A stretch of 64,000 nt of DNA from Salisapilia sapeloensis CBS 127946 (GCA_023334545.1 JAADVB010000001.1:1-64000), one strand, 5' to 3'. Shown: positions 39,938 through 46,984, counted from the stretch's first letter. The notes: generated by a model not told the origin, from the sequence alone. Made by a program: numbers and translations.

Positions 39938-40874
39938 ATGGAATCGAATCTGGATGACGAGACCTTGCAGCGACTGTATGCATGGATAGATGAAATTCCG
40001 CTTTCCAGGCCAAAGCGAAACATTGCAAGAGATTTCAGTGATGGCATTTTAACAGCCGAAGTGGTCGCGTACTATTTTCCAAAGCTCGTGGATATGCACA
40101 ATTACAGCGCTGCGAATTCTGTCAAGCAGAAGCAATACAATTGGAATACTTTAAACCGTGCGTGCTTGGCTCTCACTACGATAGCTGTTAAAGGGTATGC
40201 ACTAATACTATTTGTCTTTCATAGGAAAAGTACTGCGAAAGCTTCATGTCAACCTGTCGAAAGAGGACATGGACGACTTGGTACAATGTCGCTCTGGTGC
40301 AGTAGAGAAACTTCTCGTGAAGCTCCAAGTAAAAGTATGTGATCTTGAATGCCCATCTTTCCCTGCGTTACCAAACAGATATGGGCTCGGATGGATAGAT
40401 TGCAAACTACAAAGAACGAGTATCCAACAATGCGCCTCAAGACACAGCGCCAGCGCCTGCTGCATCTCAGTACGAACAATCTAAATCGATGGACCAAGGG
40501 ATACCACAAAAGATGTCGGAAGTCCGAGACATGCATGAACAATTCCCGCAGTCATCGTCAAAGGATAGTGACGCAGAAAATGGGGTTGAAAGAAGTGTTG
40601 CAAGCTCGGAGGTGTCTTCCATGTCGGCGCATGAACAATTTAGGCGAGAGGCGGCACTTGTCCATGAGTTTGAGACTCGACTTCAAGATAAAGACGAAAC
40701 CATAGCAGAGCTTCAGGAAACTATCAAGGTAAGCTTTACACAACCATCTCCAAGTAGACTAGATTCATGCCCTGTTCGGTGTAGATCTTGGAGCAAAAGA
40801 CGCAGAAGTTGGAACAACTCGTTCGATTAAAGGATGGCAAGATTCAGTCCCTCACCTCAAAGATGAGGACATAG
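39938..40874 (+). CDS. SPEF1: Sperm flagellar protein 1 (CH domain + coiled coil)
   Basis: LYAWIDEIPLSRPKRNIARDFSDG...VDMHNYSAANS...NWNTLNRKVL. Introns 40158-40224, 40335-40398 and 40729-40784. Confidence 0.93.
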
Positions 40875-41081
40875 TCGTAGACAGAGATTTAAGATAGAAA
40901 TGAATTTGACATGCACTAGGATGAATAGGCTAGGCTTCCGTTGCTATTAAGGATCAACGCGAACAATCCAGTAGATATAAACTATACATGTGGAAATGCC
41001 CGATTAAAAAGAATGCATTCAAGTTAACAAGTAGCACCAGCATCAACATTCGTCAACACTGTAGAGGTTATTAGCAAATTT

Positions 41082-44000
41082 TTAACCCCAGAAGCGCATC
41101 ACTTCCTCCGAAGTCTCAGCGGGTTTCAAGAGCTGCACCACAACGTCGTCTCCTTGATGCCGGTATCCGTAGATCGCCGGCAACGGACGACTGCAGTGGC
41201 GACTGAAGAGCGCCACGGTATTTGCGCCCGTGTCATGGATGACGATAAAATCACCACGGTTCGCCGTAGGCAGGCGCACTTTGCGTCCGACGAGGTCGCC
41301 TCCGAAGCACAATGGTCCGGCCACGTTATGGAACACCTCGGGCGCTGTGGATGGAGTGCCGTCCGAGCTATTCACATCAAAAGTTAGTGCACAAAGGACA
41401 TCATTACATATAGATCCATGAAAACATACCTGTAGACAGACATGCGGTGTGGGAAGAGTTCCGGCTTGTAGCAGGTGCGAAGGAAAAGGTCGGATCCGGC
41501 ATGGATGATAGCCGTTTGTCTTAGCGCATCATCATCCGTCGAAGTGAAGCCAGGGACGTCGTCATGAGTCTTTACGTACTCAATCTCGCTGACTGTCCAG
41601 CAAGTTTTACAGCAGAGACTGCGGCCGTACTCTGTCAGAACGGTACGGTGCGTGTTCTCGAACAGCTTCGGAGCACATCGACGAAGCACCTCCACATACT
41701 CGGCATACGTTGGCGTGACATCATCCGAATCGTAGTTGGCTGGGAGACCGCCTCCAATATTCACGGTTTGGATCCTGGCCTCACCCACATGAGCGTCAAT
41801 CTCATCCGCAAGTTCGCTGATGATACGCGCACCACTCGCAAGTGTTTCAAGCGTGTAGCCTTGCGATCCAACGTGGCAGTGGATGCCCGTGAGCCACTTG
41901 TGCTGCTGGAACAAGTCCTTGATCTTCGCACGATTGACATCCGTTAGAGGAACGCCGAACTTGGAGTAGACGGTGGACACACTCAAGTACTCGTTGCTAC
42001 CTGAACCGAGCAGTGGGTTGATACGCAGGCCAATGCGTGGCGGCTGCTTGTCCATTTGAGAGACAAGCTGCACAACCGTTTCGAGTTCTTCCAAGTTGTC
42101 AATGTTAATCTCGACGCCAGCGTTGAGACCGAACGCTAGCTCCGCACGCGTCTTGGCTGGACTGTCGAAGACCACCTTCTCCGGTGCACAGCCTTGGCGC
42201 AGTGCCTGCTGCACTTCAATCAACGAAGCACCTTCGAAGCCAGCACCGGCAGCGATCGCCTGCTTCACAAAGAACGAGAGCGGACACGCTTTCATGGCAA
42301 ATCGGTGTTGAAAGTGCGACGGGAATGCCGTGTGGAGGGACTTGAAGCCGTTGTCAATAGCGTCCTGGTCGAAGACGACAGCAATCTTTACGGGGTCGTC
42401 ACGTGAGAGTGCATTGGCACCGGTCGTTTCATCCTGTGCTCCTGAGCCAATGACTCCACTCTCTTTCATACGTCGCACGGCCTTGCTAATGCCATCTTTC
42501 TTGACACTAAAGTTGTGCACATTGTTTGCATCGGTATTTGTGGGAACGGATGGACTAGATGACATTGTATCTTGCGTCAGTTCGGTCCAGTGCTGTGTCA
42601 ACAAAGAGATCTTTTGCAAAATGAGACCGTCGTCGTGCGCGAATTTTTCGAACATGGCGTCCGTCTCATGTCCGCCAGCGACGCCATTAACCATTTCCGC
42701 GCTAAGTGCGATTCGTAAGACCCCGTCGTGTAACCCACCAAGTGCCACCGGTTGGCCGATCAAACACCGTCTGGAACTGATAGAGTGGGATGGAAACGTC
42801 GCGGATAGATCTTGCGAAAGGAGTTTGTGCAGCTTACGAAGCTCTGGGACGGTGAAGAACGTCGACTCATTCTTGCGGACTTTGAAAGACACGATCGTGT
42901 CCTTGGGACGTAGCCATTCGTCACTGGAAGGCTTGGGGTTCTCGAGCACTTGGACGAGGTTACCATATCTTGATTGCATCATGGACTTGCACTGCGTCAT
43001 GTAGCGATCGATAATGGCATCGACGGTGGTAGGAGCAATACGGAAGTACGGCTCCATGTTAATAAGCGCACTCTCCCATCGAAGCAACAGACCGACATTC
43101 ATGTTGGTAGATAAGCATGCACGTGTGCTGTTCATGGTCGTCGGTAGTTCGTACTTGGAAAAGAAGTCGTGGAGACCGGATGGGAAGCACACATTGCGGT
43201 TCACACCACTCGCTTGCTGCTCCATGTCCTCGATGCATTTGGACGGAAGAATGACGGAGCCGCAGAACGGAGCGCCACCAAAGTACTTGGAGCCCGTGAC
43301 CATCGTGATGAATCCACGATTGACAAACTCGGCAAAGACATATTGGTCTAAGCGTACTTGACAAGCATCCACAACTATCAAAAGACGATCACCAAATTCA
43401 CTTGCCAAAGACTCTACGGTCGACACTTTTGGAGAGCTAAAGCCAGTCTTAGTACCGACGACGAGGTGGAGCAAGACGACGTTGGAAGTGTTGTCTAACT
43501 TTTCACGAACTGTCGCTGCTACTTGTTCATCCGTACAAGCGATTTCGCCATTCTCGTCTCGACTGCCAAAGTTAATGACTTCTACCAAGTCCGTAGGGTA
43601 TCCTTGCAGTGGTTCACCTGGGGTCACTTGCTGCCCAGAAGGCGTCAGCTTGTTAAATGACTTGCCGCCAGCAGCATCGGATGAGCCGCTCCCGATCTCA
43701 CCATGCGCCATGACGAGGTTCACCACCTTGCCATGGTCAGACTGCTTCAACGCATGCAGACGGCATAAAGCAGAGGATGTAGCGATGAGCTCTGCATCGG
43801 AACCAGATGGAGTTAGCACGACACGTGCCTTGTCTTGTTGTGTGGCGGATGTAAGACCTAAGCAAGTGCTTAGACGAGTACGCACATCGTCCATCTTGCG
43901 GTCAAAGATAGCAGTTGGAGACGCTGCGTTCGGATGTGTGGATAAAGCACTTAGAAGCAGTTCCTGTCGAAGTGCCTCACATCTTTCAAACGCTTCCATA

Positions 44001-44734
44001 TTCACACCAGAGCACGTACAGCTAGCACGTCGAATATCTTGTGGCTCGTCAGTTGATTCAAGATCCTCTGGCTTGACGGATGGGACACCAGAGCAACGAG
44101 GGATGGTGGACGTATGATATTTGTTCGTTTTGCAAGTAGGACACAATATGGATCGATCATCGGAACCGCGGACCAAGAGCGACTCTGTCTGCTCCGCAAA
44201 CGGTAATGCATCACGAACAAAGGTGGCAATCTCTTCCCATTCATTACTGGACGTCGACACTTTCATGCCGTCTGCGAGCAACTGGATGACATCGTCTTCC
44301 GTCGCGGCGTTCTGTACTAGTCGCATGTATCGCACTTCCTCTGCAGCACTCGGTCCTTCCGCAGCATACGCATCGACATGTTTTTTAGCGAACGTCGCCA
44401 AGTACTTTAGTTTCGTGTATAAAAGCACCATGCTACGAGCACTACAACACGGTGAGACAAGGTGCTGGGCGGGCATCTCCAACAGACGTTCTTGCAGGAT
44501 CGAACTCAAGTGAATGGCATTCGATTCCTTTTGCGTCAGCTCAAAGCTCCCATCCATCGTAAGCTGTTGAACGCTGTCTGTATTACCATCAAGCAGTGGC
44601 AAAAGTTCAGGATGGTGCTGTCGGCACTGCGATCTTAACGTCGCTAGGTCTGTGGATTCATGACCGTGTAAAGGCACGGTTGCGTCCTTGTGACCCAAGT
44701 CGATCGTGGGCGCTTCTTCCGTCAACACTGGCAT
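41082..44734 (-). CDS. Fusion enzyme: uncharacterised fold-type-I PLP domain + DAP/Orn/Arg-decarboxylase-2 (fold-type-III PLP) domain, about 1196 aa
   Basis: One intron (41368-41429). The N-terminal domain has TPSGSDAE, VDACQVR and VTGSKYFGGAPFCG. The C-terminal domain has FAMKACPL, FDSPAKT, HCHVGSQ, NIGGGL, EYGRSL and GPLCFGGD. The track start at 44836 is TTG; the first ATG is 44734. Confidence 0.88.
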
Positions 44735-45520
44735 GGCTGGGAAGGATACAAAGGTCGAGACTTGTCGGCTTGGCGGTTGAATCTGATTGTGAAGCGAAGT
44801 GTCGCCTAGGGTGTCGCCCTGGAACAATTGGTTCAAGATGAACCCTCAAATTTTTCCAAAGTAGGCGTAACTTGTCAAAAGTGGAGGCTTCTTACAGAAA
44901 GTTGCCAGTCGTCCAACAGACTTTTATGCTTGTAGGGCTCGGACCATTACTATCGACCCCCACTTTTGGAAAAGAGGTATATCTTGGGAAAGTATTCGGG
45001 CGACACCCGGATCTGTCGCCTGTCACGCCGTGCGAAACAGACCATTGAAGCAATCTCTCTTGAAACCGTCGGATAGACTGCACGCATTTTCATGTCGGAA
45101 TGACTGGATAGGCATGATAGGAGAGACTCCTTTCGGATAGGTTTGGATGAGTTTCGTGATTACGAGAGCACCGGAAGACAGAGACCATGCATGTGGGCTC
45201 AGCTGACATGGCGGCAGTTAACAAGGAATTCCACTTTGAGATCGCTAAAATTCTTTCTATTCTATCTTTCTGAAAACACGTAGCCGCCGACTTGTATTGT
45301 ATCAGAAGCTGAACGTGAATAAGCTTTCTCGCAAGGACTAAATGATAAGAGCCTCGAGACAGGTAAAAGCTTCTGTTGGAAACATGGCAGCTTTCTGACA
45401 TCATGAGACGAGGCTTGATCGTCTACCAAAGTACATGATTCGTCAAAAACGCCAAATTTTCTACCAATGAAAAGGTAGGCGATGGACACCAACCGCACTC
45501 AACTACAGCCTAGACGGACC

Positions 45521-46984
45521 ATGGCCAAGGGGAACGATGGCAAGAAGCACAGTGCTATGCTGCGACTGCATGGATGTACACATTTCCGACAGCGTCTAGT
45601 CTGCTCCACGCTTACTGGTCGTCCTGTTTGTATCGATGAAATCCGATCGGAAGAGGAGGAACCTGGACTGACCGAGTTCGAAGCCAACTTCCTACGTCTA
45701 CTCGATAAAATGACGAATGGAAGTCAAATTGAGATCAATGAGACCGGTACCAAGCTACGGTACTCTCCTGGCTTTATCATTGGTGGCAGGATCGAGCATG
45801 ACTGTGGACTCAAGAGGTAAGTCCATCGCTACCGTGCAATACGTCTCAATCGTGGTGATCGACAATTGCACAATTAGGTCTATTGGGTGGTTCCTCGAGG
45901 GAATTGCGGCACTCGCTCCTTTCGGCAAGGTATGTTTTAGTCATAGTTTAAAGCCTCTATATTGTGTCTGATTATTTCTTGCTAGAACCCATTGAGGATG
46001 GTCATGACAGGAATCACAAACGACAATATCGACATGTCCGTTGACTTTTTCAAAGCCACTACACTGCCATTGATGAAAGTATGCCATCTATTCTCTCTCG
46101 ATTAAAGTTAAATCTATGCTCACTAACCGTCAATCTACTCAGCACTTTGGCATCGATGAAGGGCTAGAATTTAAAATCAAGAAGCGTGGTGCACCTCCAA
46201 ATGGCGGTGGCGAGGTATGCCTTCTTGCTGTGCATCTACGTGCGTTCTACAATAATAACTAAAATATCTGAACTAGATCCTCTTTAACTGTCCGCTCGTG
46301 CGCCAACTTCGATCCATTCATCTCGTGGAAGAAGGCTTTATCAAGCGAATTCGGTAAATACTTCCGACTAATGTATTAGCACCAGCACCTCATCATTCTT
46401 TTATCACAGAGGAGTGGCCTACTCAACGCGTGTGTCTCCGCAAACATCAAATCGTATCGTCGAGACGAGTCGTGGGCTGTTCAACAACCTCTTACCCGAC
46501 GTCTACATCTTTTCCGACCATTACAAGGGAGCCGAGTCTGGCCAATCTCCAGGGTTTGCTCTGTCTGTAGTAGCGGAGACAACTACAGGCGTTTTCCTCG
46601 GAGCAGAGGCAGCTGCAACTGGTGGTGAGCGCCCCGAGGATGTTGCTTCACTCGCGTCACACTTGCTCTGTGAAGAAATTAGTCGAGGTGGCTGCATTGA
46701 CAGCACGAACCAATCCTTGGCGCTGCTGTACATGGCGCTAACCCCCGAAGATGTGTCAAAGGTCCGTTTCGGCAAACTCACCCCGTTCACGTAAGTTGCA
46801 TCACATGCTCATTTACATTGTAAAGACGAATGCTGACATGTATATAAACAGCATCCAGTCCCTGCGTCATATTCGCGACTTCTTCGGCGTCACGTTTAAA
46901 ATCAAAGCAGACCCGGACACCAAGACAGTCTTCTTGTCGTGCCTTGGAACAGGATTCAAGAATCTGTCCAAGAAGGTTACATAG
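45521..46984 (+). CDS. RCL1: RNA 3'-terminal phosphate cyclase-like protein (pre-18S processing)
   Basis: FRQRLVCSTLTGRPV, EPGLTEFEANFLRLL, KKRGAPPNGGGE, GVAYSTRVSP and LRHIRDFFGVTF motifs, assembled across about 6 short introns. Confidence 0.93.

Follow-up and report, generated by a model that had tools for sequence, protein, structure and literature searches.

An oomycete protein with two predicted PLP domains joins an orphan fold-type-I domain to a distinct subfamily of LysA-like decarboxylases

The capsule amidation genes of Campylobacter jejuni encode two enzymes dependent on pyridoxal 5'-phosphate (PLP), the decarboxylase Cj1436 and the aminotransferase Cj1437, together with the ATP-grasp amidoligase Cj1438 and the phosphatase Cj1435. 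Successive steps of the bacterial methylation pathway to dimethylsulfoniopropionate (DMSP) are catalysed by a LysA-like decarboxylase and another PLP enzyme: the S-methylmethionine decarboxylases BurI and SMMDC yield DMSP-amine, and BurD turns this into DMSP-aldehyde (PMC7496086, PMC11464771). For oomycetes, Morris et al. 2009 (PMC2705460) listed three candidate ornithine (Orn)/diaminopimelate (DAP)/arginine decarboxylases per Phytophthora genome, and described the P. sojae and P. ramorum orthologues of the protein treated here as a decarboxylase with an N-terminal 'conserved domain of unknown function'. Our literature searches turned up no biochemical study of this oomycete protein. We have analyzed the orthologue of Salisapilia sapeloensis CBS 127946, encoded on the minus strand of a 64,000-nucleotide stretch (GCA_023334545.1 JAADVB010000001.1:1-64000), hereafter the window. 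It joins an N-terminal predicted PLP domain of an unannotated family, here called the orphan domain, to a LysA-like decarboxylase with a GPLCF motif. An earlier note on this DNA had put the locus forward as the best candidate in the window for an undescribed pathway; the fusion itself had already been reported in the two Phytophthora species, where orthologues of the gene were known though uncharacterised, so that its existence is not new. What is new is the fold assignment of the N-terminal domain, the size of its family, the finding that it is a conserved partner of a dedicated decarboxylase subfamily to which it has repeatedly been fused, the arguments against a LysA annotation, and a dead decarboxylase in Saprolegniales. 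The features of the locus are as follows.

41082..44734, minus: complete coding sequence of two exons, stop codon included, for a two-domain protein of 1196 amino acids (open reading frame (ORF) tables, translation, spliced RNA contigs)
44734..41430, minus: exon 1
41367..41082, minus: exon 2, stop codon included
41368..41429, minus: intron of 62 nt, GT..AG, within the decarboxylase domain (frame analysis and RNA joint)
41000..44838, minus: minimum extent of the mature transcript, whose 3' side extends beyond 41000 (RNA assemblies)
44225..44734, minus: N-terminal extension, residues 1-170, with no recognisable domain; conservation among oomycetes starts at about residue 33
42545..44224, minus: orphan PLP domain, predicted fold-type I and class-V-like, residues 171-730 (AlphaFold2 model, fold searches, family profile)
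43367-43369, minus: D456 codon, predicted pyridine-nitrogen aspartate (invariant in alignment A1 and the oomycete orthologues)
43286..43288, minus: K483 codon, predicted Schiff-base lysine in TGSK (invariant in the same sets)
42380..42544, minus: linker, residues 731-785, poorly conserved and of low predicted local distance difference test score (pLDDT) (alignment, AlphaFold2 model)
41085..42379, minus: residues 786-1196, a fold-type-III decarboxylase domain assigned to the 'GPLCF' subfamily, whose coding sequence the intron splits (Pfam, NCBIfam and PDB matches, motifs, tree)
42290..42292, minus: K815 codon, decarboxylase Schiff-base lysine in FAMK (aligns with the PLP-lysine region of solved LysA chains)
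41304..41309, minus: C1122-F1123 codons in GPLCFGGD, with Phe at the position of the LysA CE(S/T)xD Glu (HMMER alignments, motif counts)

The open frame runs from 44836 to 41384, with its first ATG at 44734. The exon-1 frame closes in an atypical tail directly past a GTATGT, while a second frame, 62 bases downstream, reaches a stop at 41082; CTAAC precedes the acceptor and the bases that follow end in TAG. Excision of 41429..41368 joins the two frames in phase and gives the product of 1196 amino acids. In three runs of the same organism (X1, X2, X4) the RNA contigs are single pieces of 3752-3780 nt that lack exactly 41368-41429, and the splice joint 41367|41430 was found in all four RNA runs compared. 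Since single spliced contigs extend across 41000..44838, one mature mRNA spans both domains. These results agree with the earlier reading of one frame with neither stop nor intron between the domains, the sole intron lying inside the C-terminal domain, and they settle the question of one transcript or two in favour of one. The coordinates and motifs then quoted are all present in the translated protein. Orthologues that can be aligned end to end, at 36-51% identity, occur in Pythium, Phytophthora, Lagenidium, Plasmopara, Albugo, Saprolegnia, Achlya and Aphanomyces; every oomycete examined carries the gene, major crop and animal pathogens among them. A further organism (B, runs X5-X8) has the same spliced transcript over 41123-44769 at ~95% identity, with 178 differences in 3585 bases, and represents either a divergent strain or a close sister species.

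The N-terminal part has no relatives in the family databases. Residues 1-760 gave zero Pfam or NCBIfam matches even at E<=1; against PDB sequences only chance matches to a DARPin and to Hir3 were obtained, and a 16-sequence profile returned zero matches at E<=10. An AlphaFold2 model of the domain, built on that 16-sequence alignment, reached a pLDDT of 83.4 and a predicted template modelling score (pTM) of 0.85. Foldseek matched this model at probability 1.00 to NifS, alanine:glyoxylate aminotransferase (AGT) and group-II decarboxylases, the last once N-terminal helices are included, and VIA-align gave Z scores of 19-21.5 over ~350 aligned residues at 10-14% identity. The top structural matches are NifS/IscS, AGT and the 2-aminoethylphosphonate transaminase PhnW (Z 19.7, root-mean-square deviation 3.5), while the AlphaFold DB clusters closest in fold are the 'uncharacterized protein' clusters of the family itself. 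The model thus allows the domain to be predicted confidently as a fold-type-I, class-V-like PLP enzyme nearest to the class-V/NifS/AGT/PhnW group, in line with the assignment proposed earlier from motifs.

The motifs of this domain are GSDDR (190-194), NKY (204-206), PSGSDAE (309-315), D456 in VVDACQ and K483 in TGSKYFGGAPFCG. In the model the glycine-rich PSGSDAE loop lies at a helix N-terminus, D456 at the end of a strand and K483 (TGSK) in a loop past the next strand, the positions expected for a fold-I enzyme. The arrangement resembles that of NifS/IscS, AGT and PhnW in the overall fold, the glycine-rich loop, and a putative catalytic pair made up of DAxQ past a strand and SxxK ~27 residues further on. 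The orphan domain differs from all three in its 10-14% identity, in the lack of any Aminotran_5 match, and in the lack of a PDB HMMER match even with a profile; it also carries ~200 extra residues, which include the GSDDR...NKY...P segment, and an unusual HxVxGxKTG motif. About 37 residues, the D/K pair among them, are invariant across bacteria and eukaryotes, and that segment, the HxVxGxKTG motif and several invariant arginines are likewise conserved. An hhalign comparison of the orphan family with neighbouring group-II decarboxylases paired D with D and K with K in its best local match, which was non-significant (E 0.43). A NifS-type persulfide mechanism is unlikely because the domain has no invariant cysteine: several members of alignment A1 have Ser in place of Cys in PPFCG, and the near-invariant Cys of DACQ adjoins the predicted PLP Asp and is not on a loop. 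Membership of the Aminotran_5/NifS desulfurases was rejected on the same ground, together with the empty Pfam and NCBIfam searches at E<=1.

A search with the family profile among 1.84 billion representatives found 1316 clusters (at 50% identity) with E<1e-30, and none of the matches listed was from a land plant or a vertebrate. Judged by sequence, the orphan domain represents a large, unannotated family of predicted PLP enzymes, with more than 1300 clusters, that neither Pfam, NCBIfam nor solved structures represent and to which no reaction has been assigned. Its relatives include stand-alone uncharacterised bacterial and algal proteins, as the earlier note had suggested.

The C-terminal part matches Orn_Arg_deC_N (PF02784) over residues 792-1040 (1.4e-37, 129.9 bits against a cut-off of 23.4), and exon 2 matches the C-terminal sheet domain Orn_DAP_Arg_deC (PF00278; 7.7e-07, 29.7 bits against a cut-off of 23). 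It has the full catalytic set of a fold-type-III enzyme, namely K815 in FAMK, H954 in HCHVGSQ, GGG at 994-996, E1035 and R1038 in TEYGR, and C1122-F1123 in GPLCFGGD, and this set is conserved in the orthologues outside Saprolegniales. The nearest solved relatives by sequence are DAP decarboxylases, a D-ornithine/D-lysine decarboxylase and BtrK. The assignment to the alanine-racemase-barrel decarboxylases thus stands on Pfam, NCBIfam and PDB matches, and the presence of two complete PLP-type domains in one polypeptide is borne out by Pfam, the RNA contigs and the orthologue motifs.

Comparison with LysA used the equivalog model TIGR01048 and PDB entries 2p3e, 4xg1, 1knw and 6n2a/6n2f. The two have in common the fold-type-III barrel and C-terminal sheet domain, the Schiff-base Lys motif, HxHxGSQ, GGG, ExGR and GPxC, as well as an Arg in the DLxxRxxY region. 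The lysA model, however, scores 154.9 bits with exon 1 and 42.6 bits with exon 2 against a cut-off of 297.9, and in HMMER alignments with five solved LysA chains the CES/CET of LysA falls on CFG of the window protein and GAY on GAN. Where LysA has CE(S/T)xD, the window protein thus reads CFGGD, with Glu replaced by Phe, and the GAY Tyr is replaced by Asn. When the 120 best stand-alone matches to the oomycete domain are compared, 116 have GPLCF and none has CE (0/120). These stand-alone relatives include enzymes of the corals Stylophora (P0272) and Porites (P0316) and of the chytrid Batrachochytrium salamandrivorans (P0259); diatoms have GPLCF enzymes too. By these signatures the domain belongs to a distinct 'GPLCF' subfamily of predicted LysA-like fold-type-III decarboxylases. 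Database labels of the coral and chytrid proteins are either absent or Orn/DAP/Arg decarboxylase. A second, stand-alone oomycete paralogue of GPLCF type, from Peronospora farinosa (P0310, 529 aa), groups weakly (74/57) with the bacterial clade, apart from the fused copy, and probably corresponds to the second 'bacterial-like' candidate in Morris et al. 2009. In Triparma strigata a GPLCF decarboxylase is fused to an isochorismatase-family hydrolase (P0280, 699 aa).

The two parts are also linked outside oomycetes. We surveyed the gene neighbourhoods of 36 bacterial loci that hold the orphan gene. Half of them (18/36) carry a gene for a fold-III decarboxylase directly downstream of the orphan gene, the median gap being 12 nt. 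These partner decarboxylases share 36-42% identity with the C-domain of the window protein, well over the similarity to the LysA chains in HMMER alignments, and have the same signature of GPLCF[GAS]GD, TEFGR, HxGADxxxRxxY and SRHCSR; one scored against the lysA model reached 241 bits, again under 297.9. At other loci an MfnA-like group-II decarboxylase lies directly upstream and often overlaps the orphan gene, and fusions of group-II decarboxylase and orphan, of ~1040 aa, are common. The remaining fusion partners are asparagine-synthetase-like, sulfotransferase and methyltransferase domains; an example is a eukaryotic transcript (P0410, 813 aa) in which the orphan domain is joined to a Sulfotransfer_4 domain. 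Brown algae have the orphan and the GPLCF decarboxylase as separate genes.

A maximum-likelihood tree was built on the decarboxylase parts. The bacterial partners form one clade (100/99) in which the actinobacterial fusions L015 and L019 are nested. The oomycete fusions form a clade of their own (98/92), from which the window protein diverges ahead of Albugo, Phytophthora, Pythium and Lagenidium, and this clade groups in turn with stand-alone enzymes of stramenopiles, that of Skeletonema for example (100/99). A second set of eukaryotic fusions is a separate clade (100/100), and a fusion in the reverse order (P0124) groups with the coral and Aplanochytrium enzymes. On this tree the orphan and the decarboxylase have merged independently in four or more lineages, in one of them with the domain order inverted, and such repeated independent fusion is strong evidence that both parts act in one pathway. 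The functional coupling of two activities suggested in the earlier note is accordingly supported by operon adjacency as well as by fusion. Its suggestion of a horizontal origin fared less well: since the oomycete decarboxylase nests among stramenopile enzymes, a recent bacterial origin is disfavoured. The orphan/GPLCF pairing is old and widespread, and it would mark a two-step pathway toward an amine. Extending across bacteria, algae, oomycetes and possibly corals, it is a strong guilt-by-association signal for an undescribed small-molecule pathway.

The other neighbours of the orphan gene are variable. They are mostly ATP-dependent carboxylate-amine ligases, of several ATP-grasp families or of the GCS2, AsnB-like or AMP-binding types, and often sit among glycosyltransferases. 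One compact type of bacterial operon, seen at L039, consists of a TauE-like permease, a GNAT acetyltransferase, an ATP-grasp enzyme, the orphan and the GPLCF decarboxylase; such operons would make identification of the product tractable. The arrangement resembles Cj1435-Cj1438 by analogy only, in that two PLP enzymes there lead to a small amine, which an ATP-grasp ligase couples to a carboxylate of a glycan, with phosphatase and glycosyltransferase genes close by; many bacterial contexts of the orphan gene follow this logic. The PLP enzymes Cj1436 and Cj1437 differ in belonging to other families (class I/II).

In Saprolegniales the second half of the protein has decayed. All five orthologues examined, from Achlya, Aphanomyces astaci, Saprolegnia parasitica, A. 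invadans and A. euteiches (P0029, P0030, P0032, P0033 and P0035), have lost the Schiff-base Lys (replaced by S, A or G), the HVGSQ His, the RxxY Arg and the GPLC Cys of a decarboxylase domain that is still full length, and all five keep every N-domain motif checked. The C-terminal domain of this lineage is, by its residues, a lineage-wide pseudo-enzyme domain. It provides a natural experiment that reveals which half of the enzyme is dispensable.

We consider it reasonably probable that the protein is a bifunctional PLP enzyme with two partner activities, in which the N-domain makes an amino acid that the GPLCF C-domain decarboxylates. By class-V chemistry the N-domain would make or remodel a non-proteinogenic alpha-amino acid, either by transamination of a keto acid or by beta-replacement on a serine-derived aminoacrylate; the C-domain would then remove the alpha-carboxylate to leave a primary amine. 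We lean slightly toward this order, with the N-domain first. It is favoured because an amine or an acid is what the ligases act on, because the orphan occurs without a decarboxylase (on Sinorhizobium plasmids with a nonribosomal peptide synthetase (NRPS) gene, and in Acetobacter), and because in Saprolegniales only the decarboxylase decays. As to the substrate, the Glu of the LysA CE(S/T)xD motif binds the distal amino group (ammonium) of DAP; since this Glu is Phe here and the RxxY Arg is kept, the side chain is probably non-basic, either anionic or neutral.

For a concrete version we favour, as a tentative guess, a sulfo-amino acid (cysteate or cysteine sulfinate) that would be decarboxylated to a taurine- or hypotaurine-like amine. 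This guess is prompted by sulfur-related neighbours, which are suggestive: a cysteine dioxygenase near the orphan in two loci, in one of them adjoining a group-II decarboxylase; a PAPS-reductase domain near it in three; two sulfotransferases in the L045/L046 cluster; a permease of the TauE/SafE family (Pfam TauE) in the five-gene L039-L040 operon; and, by fusion, the sulfotransferase domain joined to the orphan in P0410. The pair might then be an unrecognised, widespread two-enzyme route that starts from a common precursor derived from serine or cysteine, makes an amino acid bearing a sulfonate or sulfinate group (cysteate, say, from an aminoacrylate intermediate and sulfite) and ends in a taurine-like amine, a scheme that we regard as a long shot. 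If true, it would provide the genes by which algae, oomycetes, corals and marine bacteria, in which such a route is not known to be established, make taurine-type osmolytes, and the product might be used free or in amide linkage to glycans and peptides. A Pfam02784 decarboxylase is raised under high salinity in the DMSP-producing diatom Fragilariopsis, and a coral homologue exists (PMC5557254); this response is a lead from the literature that would fit an osmolyte role if those proteins belong to the GPLCF subfamily.

Several observations weigh against the proposal as a whole. A Pfam scan of 70 co-directional neighbours in the 36 loci found no third family in more than two loci; with no constant third gene, the pair must start from a common metabolite. 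The fold comparison fails to discriminate aminotransferase, lyase and desulfurase types, and PDB sequence, profile and hhalign searches gave no significant sequence link from the N-domain to characterised fold-I families. We infer all of the chemistry of both subfamilies, and the argument about the side chain leans on the substrate roles that Glu and Arg have in LysA structures. Sulfur-related neighbours occur in only ~9 of ~55 contexts, possibly by chance. Finally, methyltransferase fusions or neighbours would suit the opposite order of steps, which is also that of the characterised BurI/SMMDC and BurD, where decarboxylation precedes transamination to the aldehyde (PMC7496086).

That opposite order is a serious rival, to which we nonetheless assign a low probability. 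In it the C-domain would yield the amine and the N-domain would transaminate this to an aldehyde, and the Phe of GPLCF could hold a sulfonium or other onium group through a cation-pi contact. The precedent of LysA-like S-methylmethionine decarboxylases acting ahead of a transaminase speaks for it, as do the place of PhnW, an amine:pyruvate transaminase, among the best structural matches, the methyltransferase domains fused or adjacent in some members, the presence of GPLCF enzymes in diatoms and corals, and the salinity-raised diatom decarboxylase with its coral homologue. Against it, the ATP-grasp, GCS2, AsnB and AMP-binding ligases act on an amine or an acid and would have no use for an aldehyde, and loss of the decarboxylase alone in Saprolegniales would strip the N-domain of its substrate. 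BurD, moreover, is a class-III transaminase, of a different family from the orphan. The DMSP pathway also has a methyltransferase and an aldehyde dehydrogenase that are not consistently linked here: the scan of 70 neighbours found neither a recurrent aldehyde dehydrogenase nor an MmtN/BurB-type methyltransferase adjoining the pair. BurI and SMMDC entered this comparison through their literature descriptions only. A phosphonate route, from phosphonopyruvate through phosphonoalanine to 2-aminoethylphosphonate, was considered because PhnW is a top structural match and oomycetes have phosphonolipids; it was set aside, as no recurrent cluster with a phosphoenolpyruvate mutase-like gene adjoins the pair.

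Two further alternatives tie the protein to lysine synthesis, a link that the earlier note had also drawn. The simpler takes the public annotation at its word, as an oomycete DAP decarboxylase with an N-domain that is inert, regulatory or structural. Orthologues are indeed named 'diaminopimelate decarboxylase' in databases, LysA is both the top NCBIfam model and the top PDB relative, and oomycetes use the DAP route, the gene being one of the three Phytophthora decarboxylase candidates (PMC2705460). A different candidate, Ps108220, nevertheless clusters with the clade of bacterial bifunctional aspartate kinase-LysA enzymes (Morris et al. 2009, PMC2705460). The GPLCF domain forms a subfamily of its own, partnered with an orphan PLP enzyme that keeps ~37 invariant residues including its D/K pair. 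Given a LysA score below the equivalog cut-off, Phe in place of Glu, members in corals and a chytrid, and a domain that is dead in all five Saprolegniales, DAP decarboxylase identity is very unlikely on these comparisons; animals are not known to make lysine. We therefore give this reading very little credence. The other alternative is that the N-domain is a PLP-dependent DAP epimerase that replaces DapF and feeds meso-DAP to a fused decarboxylase specific for the D-centre. LysA-like enzymes act on D-centres and may pair with racemases, as in the DokD operon, and the fusion is universal among oomycetes. In addition, Morris et al. 2009 (PMC2705460) searched three Phytophthora genomes by TBLASTN without finding DapF. 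Every argument against LysA applies here as well. The orphan, besides, pairs interchangeably with group-II decarboxylases, which are L-specific, bacteria with the pair need DapF anyway, and class-V racemases of fold type I are rare, so that we rate this as the least probable of the readings considered. A general combination of racemase and D-specific decarboxylase was set aside, since L-specific group-II decarboxylases freely substitute for the fold-III partner.

The routine annotation as DAP decarboxylase is thus almost certainly wrong, and it distorts reconstructions of lysine synthesis. If the bifunctional enzyme should prove essential in oomycetes it would be a candidate inhibitor target, in view of the absence of land-plant and vertebrate homologues from the matches listed.

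Members of the orphan family are also found in other settings. On Sinorhizobium plasmids a 511-aa orphan-family gene (L048 8950-10485 and L049 9034-10569) overlaps the stop of a giant NRPS gene and is followed by genes for a SagB-like dehydrogenase and a phosphopantetheinyl transferase, in what looks like a cryptic peptide cluster that uses an orphan PLP enzyme. Acetobacter has orphan-family proteins of 715-740 aa (P0388, P0391, P0399) that carry the name 'GMP reductase' in UniRef and at NCBI, apparently in error; in A. ascendens (L047 8001-10148) the gene is flanked by dTDP-rhamnose genes and a His_Phos_1 phosphatase gene, and none of its near neighbours is a decarboxylase. A Pfam scan of two giant orphan-bearing proteins (4706 aa and 5695 aa) showed no coherent assembly-line logic; one has a DUF89 phosphatase, GT1 and a methyltransferase, the other HEAT repeats only.

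Neither of the ORFs that flank the gene in the window suggests a metabolic gene cluster around it. Both are on the plus strand and are apparently interrupted by introns. By reading alone, the ORF at 39938-40342 resembles the N-terminus of a calponin-homology protein (SPEF1/CLAMP-like), and that at 45482-45820 the N-terminus of an RNA 3'-phosphate cyclase-like protein (RCL1).

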